A stretch of DNA of 63,798 bases, counting the filler, from Pelomyxa schiedti (Eukaryota; Protista; Evosea), in assembly GCA_020536535.1 (NCBI GenBank). It is 10 parts of 10 records of this genome, joined end to end, with 100 filler letters (N's around TTAATTAATTAA, not from the genome) between each part and the next. Parts side by side here need not be neighbours in the genome. Positions count along the whole stretch, not along the records: positions 57,469 to 62,256 come from JAHLWZ010001554.1; 9 more parts are not named here. One strand, 5' to 3'. Of this stretch, positions 2,205 to 62,256 are shown piece after piece (the first letter of the stretch is position 1; each line of letters begins with the position of its first letter). Position numbers and translations under genes: made by a program. The notes under the pieces were generated by a model, which did no database searches, had not been told where the DNA came from, and saw only the letters and a program-made list of their open reading frames with translations.

Positions 2205-3467
2205 TCAACAGTTGTTGCAAGATGGCTTGGTGTGATGAGATGTCGGTTGTGCATTGGCATCAGATTTTGCTGCGCTTTGTTGGCTTTGAGACTTCTGTGT
2301 TGGGTCTTTCAAGGGGACAACCTTGATGTTTTCTTCTATACCACCTATGGTGCTGATGGAGATAAGTGCCTGCCCAGAGAGAATCTCATAAATTGACAGT
2401 GTTTGATCAATTCTGTTGCATACAATTAGACACCCCCTCTCCACTTTGCATTGTGAGACTTCCAGTGGATTCTCTTGGGATAGGCAGAGTGAGTGTACCC
2501 TTCTTGTGGTTTCACGACACTCCCAGATTTCATAGAACATAGTAGAGCAGCTATAAACACAAAACATGGCCTCATTCACCTGAGAAACACCATCACAAAC
2601 GCATGTATGAAGTTCTGTAACTGTGGCTGTGCTCTCCTCCAGTGCAAAAACTTGTGAATGTTCCTCAAACGTTTTCACAATGAAAACATGGGAACCTGCT
2701 TTCCCCATAATGGCTACAGAGTCAGAAGTGATCTCACAAACCGTTGGAAAAGGGAGCTTTGTTCTGCTGGTTACATGCAAGTGCCCTGCAGAGAAGGAAC
2801 CTGCCACATCCACCAGAATGCATATAATGCATCTGCCTAAAGTGGATTCCTCAAACAGCACAACAAGAGCCTCATTTGGAGCCACCCTATTAAAGGACAC
2901 GCTCCTCACAACCAGATTCCGTGAATCCGCCACAGGTCCCTCCACCGGGACCGCCATTCTCTGGTAGTTCCCATAATGGCTCACCGGCGCCACGCGCAGT
3001 CTCACGCCCTCCGTTCCCTCAAAGGAGCTCATCACCCACACGCCGTTGTCTGCGTACCAATCGGTGCAGGCTAGATCATGTGAAGGTAGGTGTTCAGTGA
3101 CACCTCCAGGAGTCAGTCCGCACAATGGGGAGAATCCAAAGAGAACCCACTTGCGCCAACGTACTTGGACTGACAACACAGTCTCGGACAGCAGGAGGGC
3201 AGAAGTGTCCCACAATTGGCAGACGAGAGGCGCGCCGTGCATGGATAACGCACGCGCGGGCGACGCAGACCCGCAGCGCCGGTGGCAGACGCCAACGAGC
3301 AGGGCCATCAGCTGCGACCAAATTGTGGGAAACATAGTCACCATCAACTTGGCCCGGCCTTCGCCGCAAAAGGTGCCTTTTCGTTGCCACGGGAACGAAA
3401 TCGCTACGACCCCGCCGCCTTCGGGGCTCCCGAACAGATTCCAACACGACGTCGCTTGGCTCTCCAT
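2205..3467 (-). CDS. Orphan family A protein, complete and intronless
   Basis: Long ORF with first ATG at 3467. N-terminal motif WSQLMALLVGVCHRRCGSASPARAL and C-terminal IYEILSGQALISI, both shared with other copies in the window. Confidence 0.7.
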   Translation of the reverse strand: MESQATSCWNLFGSPEGGGVVAISFPWQRKGTFCGEGRAKLMVTMFPTIWSQLMALLVGVCHRRCGSASPARALSMHGAPLVCQLWDTSALLLSETVLSVQVRWRKWVLFGFSPLCGLTPGGVTEHLPSHDLACTDWYADNGVWVMSSFEGTEGVRLRVAPVSHYGNYQRMAVPVEGPVADSRNLVVRSVSFNRVAPNEALVVLFEESTLGRCIICILVDVAGSFSAGHLHVTSRTKLPFPTVCEITSDSVAIMGKAGSHVFIVKTFEEHSQVFALEESTATVTELHTCVCDGVSQVNEAMFCVYSCSTMFYEIWECRETTRRVHSLCLSQENPLEVSQCKVERGCLIVCNRIDQTLSIYEILSGQALISISTIGGIEENIKVVPLKDPTQKSQSQQSAAKSDANAQPTSHHTKPSCNNC

Positions 3468-3538: not shown

Positions 3539-6020
3539 ATGTCTACGACGACAACGTCAACGGCGTCCACCGGGCTGGATGCAATGATTATGGGAAATGT
3601 TTTGCTGATGCTCACGCGACCCGCGAGGCTGGACAACAACACCACGAGGGGTGCGGCGCCGATCCCTGCGTGTCTCAAGCCAAATTTGCATGCTGTGTTC
3701 GTGGTCGCTCGTGTTTGTTCCGTACGTTGTGGTTTTTTTTTCCCCCGTGTAAAAAAAAGTAACTGTTATTATGGGACTGTATTTGTTTGTGTTTTTATTT
3801 GTCAAATATATATATATAATAGTTATTATATGAATATATGTATTAACTAAGCTCTCACTTCCGTTTCTAATAAAATGAGTGCAATATTTTCATTGAGTTG
3901 GACTTTGTTAGCGAGATATCTCCCAACGGTAGTAATGAGATGCCCAGGAGTGGAATAGGGCTTGCAGCTCGAACGCACTGTGGCAGATAATGTACCAGCG
4001 TGACTTTGGGCACTTCCCTCTGCCTGGCGCGGAGGAACCTCCTTCTGATTCCAACTGGAAGCAGATTTATAAGGACCGCTTATTCGGGACTTTTGTTGTT
4101 CATCTCACAACTGGAATTCCAGCCGACTCCCCAACGTATGGAACTGAAGATAAATACTGAAGATAAAGTTGGCAACCTCAATTGCACCCACTGACTTTTT
4201 CCATAGAATATCCCGGGAATTTTTCCAGCACTGGATGTTTTCGAAAAATAGATGCCCTGTCCACCTAGAAGTGTTTTCTGGGCTCCCCCCTGNNNNNNNN
4301 NNNNNNNNNNNNNNNNNNNNNNNNNNNNNNNNNNNNNNNNNNNNNNNNNNNNNNNNNNNNNNNNNNNNNNNNNNNNNNNNNNNNNNNNNNNNGCAACCTC
4401 AATTGCACCCACTGACTTTTTCCATAGAATATCCCGGGAATTTTTCCAGCACTGGATGTTTTCGAAAAATAGATGCCCTGTCCACCTAGAAGTGTTTTCT
4501 GGGCTCCCCCCTGCGTTTGGCGTTCGACCTCCAAGACAGCTTCCTGGAATCCAAATGGGGAAGAAAAAACCTGCTGTATGCGTTTCTTTTATATCCCAGT
4601 TTCTTCTTATTGCTGGGTGTCCTTACACCGAGGAAGACTTTGTTGAGGTTTGTCATTGATGTTTATTTGTGTTAGCTGACCCTTGTTTGATATGATAGAT
4701 GGGTCAAAAAATGGCCGAAAAGATATTTTTACCAGCGTTTGATGAGGATGACCCTGATGAAAGTGAAGAGAACAAGACTGTGCGTCATGTCTCTGCTCAC
4801 ATCGAAGATCATACTTTACTCACATTAAGTATTGAGGTTGATAACTAACAGCTACACTCGCTGTATAGCCGTAATTTATTTGTTCTGATCAAAGCTAGGT
4901 GCTTGCCAAGGATCCGATTGCCACTTTGATGAATCGGGCACGCAGCAAGCTTGTTAGTTTCAGTAGTTATGCACTCTCCGAAAGTGTCGGTGTCTTGCTT
5001 CACCCCATGTTCAAGTATGTCTTTCTATCAGATGGAAAAGAAAATCACAATTTGAAAGGACACTGAGGAAATACAATCGGCACCTCAAGAAAGCTATCTC
5101 CGGAAAGGGGAAAGCTACAACAGCCTGCTGGGATGGACAACTCAGCCAACGCTCCCTTTCCCGGCAAATAAAGGGGGAGTACCTGAACGCGTTTGGGTGC
5201 AAAACTGACTGGTACCCACCTCGTCGTCACTTTATCTTTTCACCAACAAGCATTCATTCTCAAAGGTCGAGTTCAGAAGTGTTGGAAGACCCCAGCTGCC
5301 TGAAACTCGCAAAATGTACCCGGGGTTGCACACAATGGAGTGTAGTATCACCAAACGGTTCAACAATCAACTGGGTATTTTCTCCACCGCATCAACTTCT
5401 GCTCTGGTCCATGTGCGTTTTTCCCCACCTTTTTAANNNNNNNNNNNNNNNNNNNNNNNNNNNNNNNNNNNNNNNNNNNNNNNNNNNNNNNNNNNNNNNN
5501 NNNNNNNNNNNNNNNNNNNNNNNNNNNNNNNNNNNNGTACCCGGGGTTGCACACAATGGAGTGTAGTATCACCAAACGGTTCAACAATCAACTGGGTATT
5601 TTCTCCACCGCATCAACTTCTGCTCTGGTCCATGTGCGTTTTTCCCCACCTTTTTAATACTAATAGTATTTCCCAACTCGAATTCTAAACAAATTATCTC
5701 TGCTAGTGTACTTGGTGAGGAGGACACCCTAGAGGACAAGTATGGAGTAAGCGGTTCAGACTTGGACCAACTCGAGGAGGCTTTCAGCAGGTAACAATTT
5801 GTAGTGGGTGGATATTCTTGACTGACCACCAAAACAGGGAACAACAAGCCACTGGCAGAACTGGTGACCACGACACTACTGTGTGTTACCCCCCACCCTA
5901 GGGAATACTATTCAACCTTATATTGAACACTAGGTGGAAGTTCTGCAGAGGGAGTTTGAAATTGACATTAATAAGTATGGTGATTCCGGAGCCTCTATTA
6001 CCGAAACCGACAACTCCTAA
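3539..6020 (+). CDS. F-box protein, multi-exon, C-terminal region unknown
   Basis: Exon 3539-3721 spliced to exon 3948 onward gives ...VFVVARVCS/EWNRACSSNALWQIMYQRDF, an F-box C-terminal consensus. Further GT-AG exons continue in frame (ISREFFQHW..., KSQFERTLRKY..., VEVLQREFEIDINKY...NS*). Two 100-N gaps are crossed. Confidence 0.6.
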
Positions 6021-57368: not shown

Positions 57369-57699
57369 NNNNNNNNNNNNNNNNNNNNNNNNNNNNNNNN
57401 NNNNNNNNNNNNTTAATTAATTAANNNNNNNNNNNNNNNNNNNNNNNNNNNNNNNNNNNNNNNNNNNNAAAAAGAGGTTTAACAGTGTTTTTTATCAAAT
57501 ACTACCTTTTTACCTTATTTCCTCTCAAAAAGCTTCACCCCAGGAAAAGCTTCGCCCCATGGGGCGAGGCTTTTTGAGAGGAAAAACCTAGGGCGAAGGT
57601 TTCCAGAGGGAAGTGACAGCAAAAACCTTCGCCCCTTGGGTTTTTGGGCGAAGACTTCATAGAGGAAAACACTGACACCTTCGCCCCTTCGCCCATGAT

Positions 57700-60600
57700 C
57701 CAGTTATGCAGCTGGGTTAGTGCTGCTCTCTGCCCTTCTGTGAGGTTTTCCCATGTGATGCTGGCGGTTTTCCACTCAGCCTCATCCGTCTGTACTGTGG
57801 TGATGAACAGTTGGGCCACCCTTTCCTCTGGGGCTATTTCGTCGTATGGGTCCCTCAGTTTCAATAGCATAGGGGGAATCGCCTGTGCAGTGTCGGCCTG
57901 TTCCGCGCTTCTCATTCTTTCCTCCTCTACCGTGACTGGCCACGCTGTTGCGACGGGCTGCCCGGCCCTCACCACTAGTGTGGCCGCTCCTTTGTTGAGT
58001 AGACCCACGGTCGCCACTCGCAGGTCGTCGAGCTGGGCAACGCGGGGTCCCCAAATACCATTCCTCGCGGGAGTAGCACCCATCGCAGCCACACCCGCTT
58101 TCCGGCGTGTGATGGACTTACTGACTCCACCGTGAGCCGGCGTGTGGTACCCGGTGGTACGTGCTGGTCCATAGTGGCAATTAGAGTGGCCTTTCCATCG
58201 TCGTTCGTGGGGTCGATAAAGTCCCTCTTCCAGTCCCCACAGCGTACGCGTCCTTTTGCCATTGACAGCTCAGCACCCACCTTCCGCAGTAGGTCTAAGC
58301 CTATAAGGGCTTGGACTGGACACCCTTGGATTATGACGAAGTCGTGTTGTATCTTTTGCCCGCAAATGTGTGCCTTCATCCTTGCACGCCCCATTGCCAG
58401 CACCCGGCCTCCAATGCCTGCAATTCTGCCACACCACGGCTCCCTGGTGATGTCCCCATCGGCCCATTGTATCCAACGGAAGGTGGCCTCATCCAGTATG
58501 GATATCGTCGCGCACGTGTCCAACGTTAGCATAACTCTCTTGCCACCGATTCTTCCCCTGATGGTAGGTAATGCGGCACCTGATCCCCCATCCTTGAATA
58601 TGCACACCCTGCCTTGCACCACGTTCTTCTCCCCCATTGGGTGGGTGTCAGTGTCCATCCTTAGGTCTGCCCATGTAACTGTCTTGCGTGCTGTGGTCAC
58701 TCCGGTCGGTTTCTCAGTGTCCCCAACTGAGCCTGGAAGGCTCCCCCTTTCTCCACCCAGTGGAGTGCCCATGGTGTCATCTGACACTGATGGGTTGGCC
58801 AGTGTAGGGTTAACAACTGCCAATACCACGGTTCCAGGGGTGACGTGGTGCCCCAATATCTCTCCATGACTATAAATATTATGATTGTGCGGTGGGCCCA
58901 ACAATCCAGCCTCACACGTAGGTTTATATTCGAGCAGAGGGCCCAACAATCCAACCTCTCTCGCCGGTTTATTCCTGGTGGGTGCGCTGGCCACCAGTGT
59001 ATTAGAGGGAGGTGTGTTAGAGATATTAGGACTGCAATACCCAACCCGGGTTTGCTTCCAGTTTGTGTGTTTGGGGGAACAACCATCTTGCAATCCATTT
59101 TGCATTCCCAACATGGCCTCCCTCATGGTAGGCGTTAAAACCCCAGGGCTGACTTCCAGAGCCCCTATGTACGCATGAAGAAAAAAACGGTTGAAATTAA
59201 TCATTTATTGGTTTAGGGTTTACTTGGGGTTTTAGGTACAAAACTCTCCATGTCGTCCATCTGCCTCTTCATCTGCTCCCACCTTGCCCAACACTCAATA
59301 GGGTGCTGCTCCCTCCACTTATTGCAGTCGTAGATGCTATGTGCCACTGGGTTGCCACACAGTCGGCATGGGCTGCAGCAATTCCTCCAAGCATGCCCCA
59401 TCACACCACAATTGTTGCATCGCATGGACCCCCATCGGCTAGATCTACCTTGATAGCCCAGCCCTCCCCCAGACCACCGGGGTCGGGGCTGTATGGGTGG
59501 TTGTCGTGTTGTTGGTGGCTGTGGATTTGATCCCGGGTAGGATTCACAGGATGGCGCGCTCCAGCCGATCTGGGGCTCCATGGTCCTGTGGCCATTGGCA
59601 TTGGGCATGCCGTAAATAGGGCTCCCTTGCATCCCTACTGCACCCTGAGGAGCTGATGCTTGAGCCACTGGAAGGTCGGTTTGCACGTAAGCATATTGGG
59701 GGTTTGTCAGGAAGACATTATCCCGTGGTTGCTGCTGTGTACTTTCCCTTTTGAGTAGGGAGTTCTCCAAGACCACCAATCTCCTCTCAGTGTCACTCCT
59801 GTGCCCTTGTGCCCACGTTGAGTGTTGAGTCCCTCTTGTGTGTTCCTCACCCTTGTTCTTCCCTCCCCCTTCCTCACTGCTGGAGCTATCCTGACGGAAT
59901 CTGCCCCTCCCACTCTTCTTGCCCCATTGCCTGTACCCATGCTCCTCCAGCTCTGAGTGTGTCTCTTCACTGTCGGTGCTGGGGTCACTACTATCCTCCT
60001 CGTAACCTTCACCCTTCCTCGCCCAGTGTATCTCTCTTCTCACTGATCCTCGTCGTTCGACCTGCTGCACACCCTGACTCTCACCTCTTCCACTGGTGCG
60101 TCGCCTCTTAGGGGCTGCTACTCGGTGTGATTTCCTGTGGGTACCTGGAGACACCTTCCCCTGTTGTCCCAGGTCATCCTCCTCACTTTCCACAAGGAGA
60201 GCTCTCTCAGTTCGCTGACGCTGTTCAAGCTCCTTCATCAGTGTGTGTGCCTCTTCCTCCCTCCTTGCCTGGTCCACCAGTTCTGGTATGGTGGTGATGT
60301 CACCTGCCCGGAGCAGACCTGCTCATATTTCTTTCACCATCCCTTCCTGTATTTTGAGGATGAGAGGCCGCCCCACCAGCCCAGGCTCGGCACAATGCCA
60401 GCGCTGCACCATCTTCCTGATGTAGGTGGACACTGACTCTGATGGTGATTGCCTAGTTTCAGCCACGTCCTGTTGCAGTCTCTCCATGCCAGCCTCCCCA
60501 ATGAAGTGGTTGCAGCAGCTTTCCAGCACGCTGGGAGGGTAGGCATCATCGGGTATTTCATCGGCCCATGGTGCTGCCACCCCTTTTATCAAGCTACAAA

Positions 60601-60980
60601 ACAGTTGATTGGTCCGCACAGTCGTCAGCCGCTGGTTCCTGGTGAGGTTGTGGAAGTCTTCCAGCCATATGAGCAGGTGCTCAGGCCGCATCAGCGCTGG
60701 GTCCACGGCCTTCAGCTGCCAAGGCTCGACACACTTGGTGCTGGCCAAATCCTCCACGCATCTTGTGTCACACGCGCGTTCTACTTCTGCCTCTTGCTCT
60801 CTGTGGCGTTAGTGCGGGCGTTCCCGCTGTTCTTGGGTGTAATAGGCATAGGGATCGATTTAAGCACTCCACCACGTGTAAGACAAGCCCTTGTGGATGT
60901 CCGAAACGAAAGTCGGCAAGCGAACAAAAGTGTTCTCTATTATATCTATAACTTCTAATCCTTTAGGATAGTTCTAAACA
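57700..60980 (-). mobile_element. Ty3/gypsy LTR retrotransposon 5' half (LTR, PBS, gag, protease); RT/IN not present
   Basis: Gag RQSPSESVSTY, knuckles CNNCGVMGHAWRNC and CRLCGNPVAHSIYDC, protease LDTCATISI, PBS TGGTGGAGTGC. In-frame TGA at 60323-60325. Confidence 0.88.
60864..60980 (-). promoter_or_regulatory. Primer-binding site (60864-60874) and candidate short 5' LTR (60877-60980)
   Basis: The minus strand reads TGTTTAG...TCTTACA-CG-TGGTGGAGTGC. The LTR start is tentative because no second LTR is present. Confidence 0.6.
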
Positions 60981-61084
60981 GTGTGTGTGGTGATGTCACT
61001 GCGACTGCTGATAGAACTATAGCCGATCTGGTCCGGTTTGGGTGAGTGTGATTTAGGTCTGCTGGATGTGGGTTCTGAAACGGC

Positions 61085-62256
61085 CTACACCTCCAACCCT
61101 CGCTGAAGCTTCCACTTGCCATTGTGTTCCCTCTGAAGCTCTGAACATTCTCTCTGTGTGTCCTCGATGGCCTTGTGGAGTGTGCCTCCAATTGAAACCT
61201 GCTCAGACAGCTCCTTTGACAGCACTGTGTGTTTGTCAGCGAGCTTTGTGCACTCTGCAAACTGGCACCTCTGGAGTTGTGCGAGTGTGTCTGAGAGAGT
61301 GCGCAGCAATTGGAATGGTGGTGTGAATGTATTATCACGTTGAAGCTGTAGAAGAGGTTTCATCAGAATGTCATCCACTGTGTCACCATCATCACTCTCT
61401 GTGTTGTTTTATTTTGTTTGTCAAGTCAACAGATAATGAGTGTTTTTTTACCTTCTTCTTTCGGAACAGTGTACGTTGAAGTGGCAGAGGACTTGATTCC
61501 CAAAACCTTTTTTGTGAGTGTTGAGATGTTCCTGGCACACTCCTGGATCTCAGGCTCACTGTTATGCACCGTCAGTGTCTGCCCAAGGAGCTTCTTGCAT
61601 GAAGAATCTGATTCGTTCAGTTTCATCACCAGTGCGCCTTTCCGTTCAGTGAGTTTCGTCAGGTGCGATGCCAGTTCCTTGTTGGATTCTGTTGCTCTCT
61701 GGAGACTGTCATTCAGCTTTTTCACTGATTCATCAAGCAGGACAAACTCTGATGCGAAAGTCACCAACTGAGACTGGAGCAACTTCCTTCACCATGCTCC
61801 TTCCCCTGCACCCACTGGCCATCATACCTGTCACCGTTTGCCCACAGCCTCACACCCCGACCATGGAACACCTCACCAACGTAACTCCCTCCTCCAGCAC
61901 CAAACAGGATACTCCCTGTTCCACATTTCATGCCGTGGTCAAACTGACCATGGTAGATGTCACCTGAGCCATCAGGTGACATCCACGTTCCCACACTGTG
62001 CCACTTGTGACTGTCCCACTCACCCTCATACACCATCGCCATTGCTCCTGTGGCCCCCCCTTGGTTGTCATCCTCCTTTGCACACCCCACCCCTGCATCT
62101 CATTACAATTTGCAGTTGCATTCCACACCCACTCGCCATCCCTCACATCCACACCGTTGCTGTCGTGCCACGTTCCCCTTTTCCTGTGGTTGTCCCTCCA
62201 CAGCCCCTCAAACCAGCTGCCACCAACCAGAAGGAGGTCACAAAGTGCCAGAAATG
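61085..62256 (-). pseudogene. MORN-repeat plus coiled-coil gene, degenerate and frameshifted
   Basis: YEGEW, YHGQFDHG, YDGQWVQGKEHG repeats. A frame change leads into the coiled-coil exons 61426-61782 and 61085-61378. Confidence 0.6.

Follow-up and report, generated by a model that had tools for sequence, protein, structure and literature searches.

How does a retrotransposon make a Gag-Pol polyprotein when the boundary between its gag and pro frames is closed by stop codons in every frame? Textbooks give two standard ways in which retroelements produce Gag in large and Pol in small amounts, frameshifting and readthrough, and exceptions to these are very few. The question is raised by a copy of a Ty3/gypsy long terminal repeat (LTR) retrotransposon in the anaerobic, free-living amoeba Pelomyxa schiedti (assembly GCA_020536535.1). 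This copy lies in JAHLWZ010001554.1, which supplies positions 57,469-62,256 of the window (the whole 63,798-nucleotide stretch of DNA that was analyzed, to which coordinates refer unless another locus is named), and was read on the minus strand. An AT-rich segment of 59 nt separates its gag and pro frames. The position of this segment, its phase, its GT and AG ends and a 3′ motif are kept over three diverged lineages, the segment is absent from one relative, and it fits the introns of the host. These features point, with a probability of roughly 0.7, to a genuine and conserved U2-type GT-AG spliceosomal intron at the gag/pro boundary, such that unspliced RNA would yield Gag, spliced RNA would yield Gag-Pro-Pol, and splicing would set the ratio.

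The junction comprises the following features.

59213-60808, minus strand: gag open frame, interrupted by an in-frame TGA (60325-60323) and closed by the stop TAA (59215-59213)
59165-59223, minus strand: putative spliceosomal intron of 59 nt, GTAAAC...ACATAG, phase 1, GC content 0.31, which contains the gag stop and has homologous segments in three other copies (L001, L002 and L003)
59175-59182, minus strand: TTCTTCAT, the invariant core of the 3′ motif in four copies, a candidate branch site and pyrimidine tract
57975-59164, minus strand: exon 2 (linker and protease), open from the acceptor and ending at TAG 57977-57975

Read from the sequence, the GT occupies 59223-59222 and the AG 59166-59165, spanning 59 nt, and the AT-rich GT..AG segment that a first-pass annotation had placed at this junction is present with these ends. 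The same annotation held that retention of the segment stops Gag, and the Gag terminus indeed reads ...FVPKTPSKP before the TAA at 59215-59213; readthrough would meet the TGA that had been predicted, followed in the gag frame by TAG and TAA. The pro frame is closed, as had also been stated, by a TAA just before the ATG at 59204 (59207-59205), and by two further TAA codons upstream (59222-59220 and 59234-59232), while the third frame is stopped by TAA at 59199-59197. Thus, the segment is closed in three of three frames and there is no overlap of gag and pro. Frame translation bore out the proposed KTP-R-ALEVSPG fusion: excision joins a split Arg codon, A/GG, in phase 1, to read ...KTP-R-ALEVSPGVL... 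in frame with the retropepsin open reading frame (ORF). The 60 nt centered on the segment have a GC content of 0.30, the minimum of the element's coding part, which elsewhere ranges from 0.45 to 0.67; for the segment itself the value is 0.31, versus ∼0.53 in its flanks.

Three recoding mechanisms were considered for this junction and rejected. Programmed frameshifting in the −1 or +1 direction finds no ORF overlap and no slippery heptamer, and stops at 59234, 59222 and 59207 close the pro frame. The junction RNA folds no better than shuffled sequences (z = +0.78) and shows no stimulatory structure. Readthrough would have to pass TAA, TGA, TAG and TAA in turn, and pro sits in another frame. Bypass was ruled out on the anatomy of the junction. 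In the predicted fold, the 3′-terminal 10 nt of exon 1 (CUAAAACCCC, 59226-59235) pair with GGGGUUUUAA early in exon 2 (59134-59143), so that the segment is looped out.

The restored frame was set aside as weak evidence for an intron. Around the junction, 64 GT..AG pairs (20-300 nt) yield a stop-free fusion; therefore, the frame fit alone is not significant and the weight rests on relatives. The window copy is, moreover, a dead and truncated member of its family that still preserves the junction architecture. It carries a TGA in gag and a 1-nt frameshift before the reverse transcriptase (RT) region, and its RT is truncated by a foreign repeat. For this reason, too, the junction question was decided on relatives.

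Relatives were found by a full HMMER search with the pro ORF against 1.84 billion representatives, which returned 17 matches. The close matches are all P. schiedti gene models, and the contigs that carry them were compared. The sibling copy L001, 93% identical to the window copy, has a segment of 62 nt at 3546-3607 (GTAACC...ACATAG/G), with three extra nucleotides in a T run. The family's other copies agree: six contigs from sequencing runs cross 59165-59223, representing at least three copies (99%, 98.8% and ∼90% identical), and none of the six skips the segment. In L002, whose protease is 41% identical at the amino acid level, the segment comprises 73 nt at 4938-5010 (GTACCG...TGTGTAG), in phase 1 with the split codon G/GT; its GC content is 0.37, versus 0.61-0.66 in the flanks, and Gag ends ...AEPEPG, with the gag stop six codons into the segment. 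In L003 (54% amino acid identity in the protease), it comprises 76 nt at 1271-1346 (A/GTAGTC...GTGTAG/GA; GC content 0.33), again in phase 1 and again splitting an Arg codon; here Gag ends ...LSTP and the frame is open after excision. In both L002 and L003, the segment contains the gag stop and also closes the downstream frame, and its excision restores the protease frame. The junction is absent from two further loci, L004 because of a deletion and L005 because the contig ends. Other searches added no junctions: the C-terminal part of Gag (369 amino acids) had no matches in a word-index protein search, scans of IMG/VR and JGI metagenomes with the pro ORF and with a three-sequence protease alignment gave no relatives, a phage DNA collection gave no match, as expected, and a search with the region of gene model P0006 for long Gag-Pol relatives retrieved generic, distant Ty3/gypsy proteins only and no additional junctions.

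Comparison of other genomic copies had been suggested as one way to check the proposed intron, and its outcome agrees with the proposal. The GT donor and AG acceptor are present in all four copies (window, L001, L002 and L003), that is, in the sibling as well as the diverged copies, and all four share phase 1. After excision the downstream frame is open in every copy except L001, where a 1-nt deletion private to that copy, upstream of the donor, disrupts it. The changes in length (59, 62, 73 and 76 nt) lie inside the segment; from one lineage to another they do not amount to multiples of three, the lengths being 2, 2, 1 and 1 modulo 3. None of the copies carrying the segment has a slippery or overlapping junction. 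Because the offset modulo 3 is not conserved and no ORFs overlap, frameshifting and readthrough are excluded; the earlier claim that frameshifting cannot make Gag-Pol therefore stands. Relative to gag, the genomic pro frame is −1 in the window copy and +1 in the L002 and L003 lineages, so one fixed frameshift mechanism cannot serve all.

The same comparisons bear on the possibility that the 59 nt are debris or a private insertion in a dead copy, at what was formerly a −1 frameshift or readthrough site. The window copy is certainly defective: its gag has a TGA, 1 nt is deleted near 58043 and RT is truncated. Its pro lies in the −1 frame. However, every copy of the family has the segment, and two diverged lineages, in which the offset is +1 rather than −1, have homologous ones. 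The missing overlap, heptamer and structure speak against a former recoding site, and the segment is not a dispersed mini-repeat or introner-like sequence, as no further copy occurs in the ∼45 kb of loci searched, a small sample. Simple decay is thus largely refuted, and we regard it as highly improbable.

What the lineages retain within the segment is consistent with splicing signals. Between lineages, segment identities (0.55-0.61) do not fall below those of the coding flanks (0.46-0.59). An invariant TTCTTCA lies 9-12 nt before the YAG in the four copies (alignment A3 and pairwise intron alignments), and represents a plausible pyrimidine tract and branch site. The extended form, TTCTTCAY, resembles yUnAy, and its spacing resembles the short branch-to-AG distances of the few host introns seen, from which a host consensus is not established. 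Judged from the sequences, the evidential weight is carried by boundaries that are GT and AG and have remained so, by this conserved 3′ motif, and by host-like size and composition.

The P. schiedti genome has 7.43 introns per gene, 98.4% of them GT-AG, in an annotation made with Augustus, PASA and EVM (PMC8887013). For comparison we used introns that lie in the host portions of gene models at these loci, a small sample in which introns are 40-104 nt long, mostly 61-64, with GC contents of 0.36-0.45, and in which one donor is GTAAAC. This sample includes introns in the metallophosphatase part of L002 (61-104 nt, GC content 0.36-0.44) and a MORN gene intron (40 nt, 0.45); host gene introns in L001 measure 47 and 54 nt (0.34-0.37), and in the window's own MORN gene an intron begins GTAAAAA and is 53 or 74 nt long. 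The junction segments (59-76 nt, GC content 0.31-0.37) match this small host sample in length and composition, in line with the earlier description of the window segment as host-intron-like in size. The NCBI model for L002 annotates an intron that is exactly this segment. We gave this annotation no weight, because the same annotation also invents stop-hopping introns in transposable element (TE) copies, such as a spurious one of 73 nt that spans the gag TGA in L001, and so is not independent.

One relative has no segment. L006, a Logan contig from run SRR23919873, has a homologous Gag C-terminus up to ...PG, where the BLASTP alignment stops at the junction. Past this point the contig stays in frame (CCCG GTAATG) for ∼80 more codons without meeting a stop or an AT-rich segment, and it is uninterrupted at the codon that L002 splits (CCTG/intron/GT). 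Protein similarity fades just past the junction, which leaves the 3′ boundary with a weaker anchor than the 5′ one. The L006 RT is about two-thirds identical to that of L002, as judged by eye from the translation rather than computed. Presence in L002 and absence in L006 at the same codon looks like the pattern of intron gain or loss; L006 would either never have had the intron or have lost it via spliced RNA, two histories that the contig does not distinguish. By eye (translations and alignment A4), L006 is also without three stretches of ∼15-17 amino acids in the protease and RT, and has several frameshifts. L007, a contig from a more distant outgroup, has ordinary overlapping gag and pro frames.

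If the segment were not spliced, it could be an intercistronic spacer: an AT-rich insertion would have split an ancestral gag-pol ORF, with Pro-Pol translated separately from a nearby AUG by termination-reinitiation, leaky scanning or internal entry. An ATG at 59204 lies 8 nt past the gag stop and is retained in the sibling L001; in L003 an in-frame ATG precedes the AG by 12 nt, and in L002 one follows it by five codons. The frame-restoring property would also be inherited whether the segment is spliced or not, and no spliced RNA has been seen in the runs at hand, which are DNA-like. The position of the ATG is not conserved, however, and none occurs within the L002 spacer, so that reinitiation at 59204, the fallback offered by the first-pass annotation, is weakened by an ATG kept at that position in the sibling only. 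GT, AG, the pyrimidine- and branch-like motif, and host-intron size and composition are kept though the coding flanks are only ∼50% identical, and a mere spacer has no reason to keep intron-like signals. LTR elements (Metaviridae and Retroviridae, spumaviruses excepted) normally need Gag-fused Pol for packaging, which we also count against separate translation. On these grounds we consider an unspliced spacer unlikely.

Several observations weigh against an intron at this boundary. The lineages owe the restored frame to an ancestral continuous ORF, and thus three of them do not amount to three independent tests of frame. Every copy examined is defective somewhere. The four runs that hold the element, all from one sample, are not on record as RNA and resemble amplified DNA, with one contig also keeping a host intron; no segment-skipping joint at 59165-59223 occurs in contigs from these DNA-like runs. 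An in-frame ATG is found within ∼40 nt of the acceptor in each lineage, at positions that are not conserved.

If the segment is an intron, expression might proceed as follows. Unspliced RNA would be translated to Gag alone, because the gag stop lies 3-6 codons past the donor in all lineages, and would also be the template for reverse transcription; the reverse-transcribed RNA must be unspliced, since all genomic copies seen keep the intron. The spliceosome would remove the segment from a part of the RNA, fusing gag with pro-pol in frame through the split Arg codon to give a Gag-Pro-Pol polyprotein. The spliced fraction would set the Gag:Pol ratio, replacing ribosomal frameshifting or stop-codon readthrough. 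The element would have to both recruit and partly evade the host spliceosome, because reverse transcription of spliced RNA would erase the intron. Soon after the gag stop, every version of the segment also holds AATAAA or ATTAAA (window 59203-59208, minus strand; L002 ∼4975-4985; L003 ∼1308-1316). Such hexamers are likely due to chance in AT-rich sequence, but could represent a polyadenylation signal that splicing removes, which might additionally permit a short gag-only mRNA.

The intron could also be real without acting as a switch. It might be removed efficiently from all translated RNA, the unspliced form being genomic only, or it might serve expression or export (intron-mediated enhancement), with Gag excess arising by another mechanism such as degradation of Pol. 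The structural evidence is the same for this possibility as for a ratio-setting intron, and single-ORF gag-pol chromoviruses exist, of which L006 seems to be one. A gag stop so near the donor in all lineages means that unspliced RNA encodes a complete Gag, a weak counterpoint because stops are likely to arise by chance in AT-rich sequence. We judge an intron with no role in the ratio to be quite improbable, and a partly spliced intron that sets the Gag:Pol ratio remains our preferred interpretation. As for its history, the odds are slightly in favor of an old amoebozoan chromovirus lineage having swapped recoding for a regulated gag/pol intron, kept it through the divergence of at least three families, and so invented independently, for the second time, the strategy of the plant Ogre elements, here at the canonical site of recoding and in another eukaryotic supergroup.

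The remaining features of the piece, which on the minus strand runs 5′ to 3′ from part of a MORN-repeat gene through the 5′ LTR, gag, the 59-nt segment, the retropepsin ORF and the start of RT to a palindromic repeat, are as follows.

61090-62256, minus strand: part of a MORN-repeat gene (Pfam MORN)
60830-61089, minus strand: 5′ LTR of the gypsy element, starting with TG at 61089 and matching both LTRs of the sibling L001 (2250-2514 and 7394-7591)
59324-59419, minus strand: two CCHC-type zinc knuckles at the Gag C-terminus (CNNCGVMGHAWRNC and CRLCGNPVAHSIYDC), read from the sequence
58266-58568, minus strand: retropepsin (aspartic protease) domain (Pfam RVP, E = 6.7e-7; residues 213-313 of the ORF from 59204)
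57699-58092, minus strand: pol continuation in a shifted frame to the start of RT (...WENLTEGQRAALTQL); similarity to the sibling ends at 57699
57469-57698, no strand assigned: foreign GGCGAAG-rich palindromic high-copy repeat that truncates RT and is not part of the element, with inverted repeats at 57518-57542 and 57560-57584

The window copy has a 5′ LTR, a gag with two knuckles and an RVP domain, and nothing past the start of RT. P0002, P0003 and P0006 contain Gag parts that are homologs of its gag; the counterpart knuckle in L003 matches Pfam zf-CCHC (E = 7.5e-5), and tblastn matches occur in L002, L003 and L006. Exon 2 ends at TAG 57977-57975 because the window copy is without one G near 58043. 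Siblings (run contigs and P0001) have an additional G behind 58043, and the L001 ORF at 3777-5441 continues into RT. The Pfam order in L001 is RVP, RT_RNaseH, Integrase_H2C2, rve and Chromo, followed by the 3′ LTR, and the RT core is seen in P0006 (RVT_1). Because L001 has both LTRs and the order protease-RNaseH-integrase-chromodomain, its domain content identifies the family as a chromodomain-bearing (chromovirus-type) Ty3/gypsy LTR retrotransposon of P. schiedti.

Several observations on the family stand apart from the junction. The gag TGA (window 60323-60325, minus strand; L001 ∼3133-3135) is common to both copies despite different flanks, and therefore both descend from a master that already carried it; P0002 has Gln at the homologous residue. 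The stop would then be tolerated, unless the spread of the family was non-autonomous. A short repeated motif occurs in every lineage in the interval from the junction to the protease: GLLGP twice in the window copy (58879-58968, a 45-nt tandem repeat), ALGGA four times in L002 (∼5070-5250), and CLLGDS twice in L003 (∼1530-1620), with a single CLLDSD in L006 (∼390-410). Such motifs could be sites of protease cleavage or could serve in docking.

The element is inserted in a very high-copy MORN-repeat gene family (61090-62256), where read depth is ∼2000 versus 25-50 over the element, and contigs of this host family part from the window sequence exactly at 61090. Another copy of the element family, L004 (2204-3367), also adjoins a MORN gene, at a different point. 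Chromodomain integrases target chromatin states, and the two MORN-adjacent copies may hint at an insertion preference. Depth is 200-430 over the palindromic repeat at 57469-57698, which is probably another P. schiedti mobile element or a satellite-like repeat. NCBI models of P. schiedti are chimeric on TE copies, joining MORN and gag (P0003) or Gag-protease-RT and a metallophosphatase (P0006), with loci at L001 2973-3285, L002 3323-9283 and L004 2253-5701; in these models, 'introns' of normal GC content merely skip stops and frameshifts.

If the proposed mechanism is correct, the element would join plant Ogre as a second and independent example of a polyprotein that requires splicing, in a distant host, and a splicing solution at the gag/pol boundary would be evolutionarily accessible. 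It would raise the questions of how intron-containing genomic RNA is exported and packaged, how partial splicing is kept up, and how a retroelement retains an intron. Elements of this kind would be misread by TE annotation pipelines built to find a single ORF or an overlap, and gene predictors give chimeric models on them, as seen here. Such models are an annotation artifact to flag for users of the P. schiedti proteome.

Among known systems, the standard recoding of LTR elements at gag/pol uses −1 or +1 frameshifting or stop readthrough (Gao et al. 2003, as cited in PMC6317226). The Pelomyxa segment occupies the same position in the element and presumably serves the same purpose, that of keeping Pol below Gag, and L007 shows the ordinary overlap. 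It differs in that the two ORFs do not overlap and every frame is stopped, in the variability of the offset, and in the lack of a slippery site and of RNA structure. Spumaretroviruses make Pol separately from a spliced mRNA, without Gag, so that its level is set by the splice and not by frameshifting. The Pelomyxa splice, in contrast, would create a Gag-Pro-Pol fusion. In Ty1/copia elements (Drosophila copia, BARE and Arabidopsis EVADE), a gag-only subgenomic RNA is produced and splicing adjusts the Gag:Pol ratio (PMC3735527, PMC5580714). As proposed for Pelomyxa, the ratio there is set by splicing instead of recoding, but the splice removes pol to yield more Gag and the unspliced RNA encodes Gag-Pol, such that the Pelomyxa arrangement would be the mirror image.

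The closest known system is Ogre, a group of Tat-lineage Ty3/gypsy elements in legumes. According to two reports, a stop-bearing intron interrupts the Ogre polyprotein, partial splicing restores it, and unspliced RNA gives the upstream product, the partly spliced intron separating GAG-PROT from RT-RH-INT (PMC6317226, PMC12786077; the former cites Neumann 2003 and Steinbauerova 2008). Both elements are LTR retrotransposons whose polyprotein is interrupted by a stop-containing intron, putative in the Pelomyxa element. The Pelomyxa segment, 59-76 nt long, lies between gag and pro, the classical site of recoding, whereas the Ogre intron lies between PROT and RT; in L001, pro and the start of RT form one continuous ORF (3777-5441), unlike in Ogre. 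Splicing has been demonstrated experimentally for Ogre, and that of the Pelomyxa element is predicted from sequence. The Pelomyxa host is an amoebozoan and the lineage is chromovirus-like, whereas Ogre is a plant Tat element, and the origin of the Pelomyxa segment would therefore be independent. Thus, the Pelomyxa element probably works like Ogre without being a member of it.

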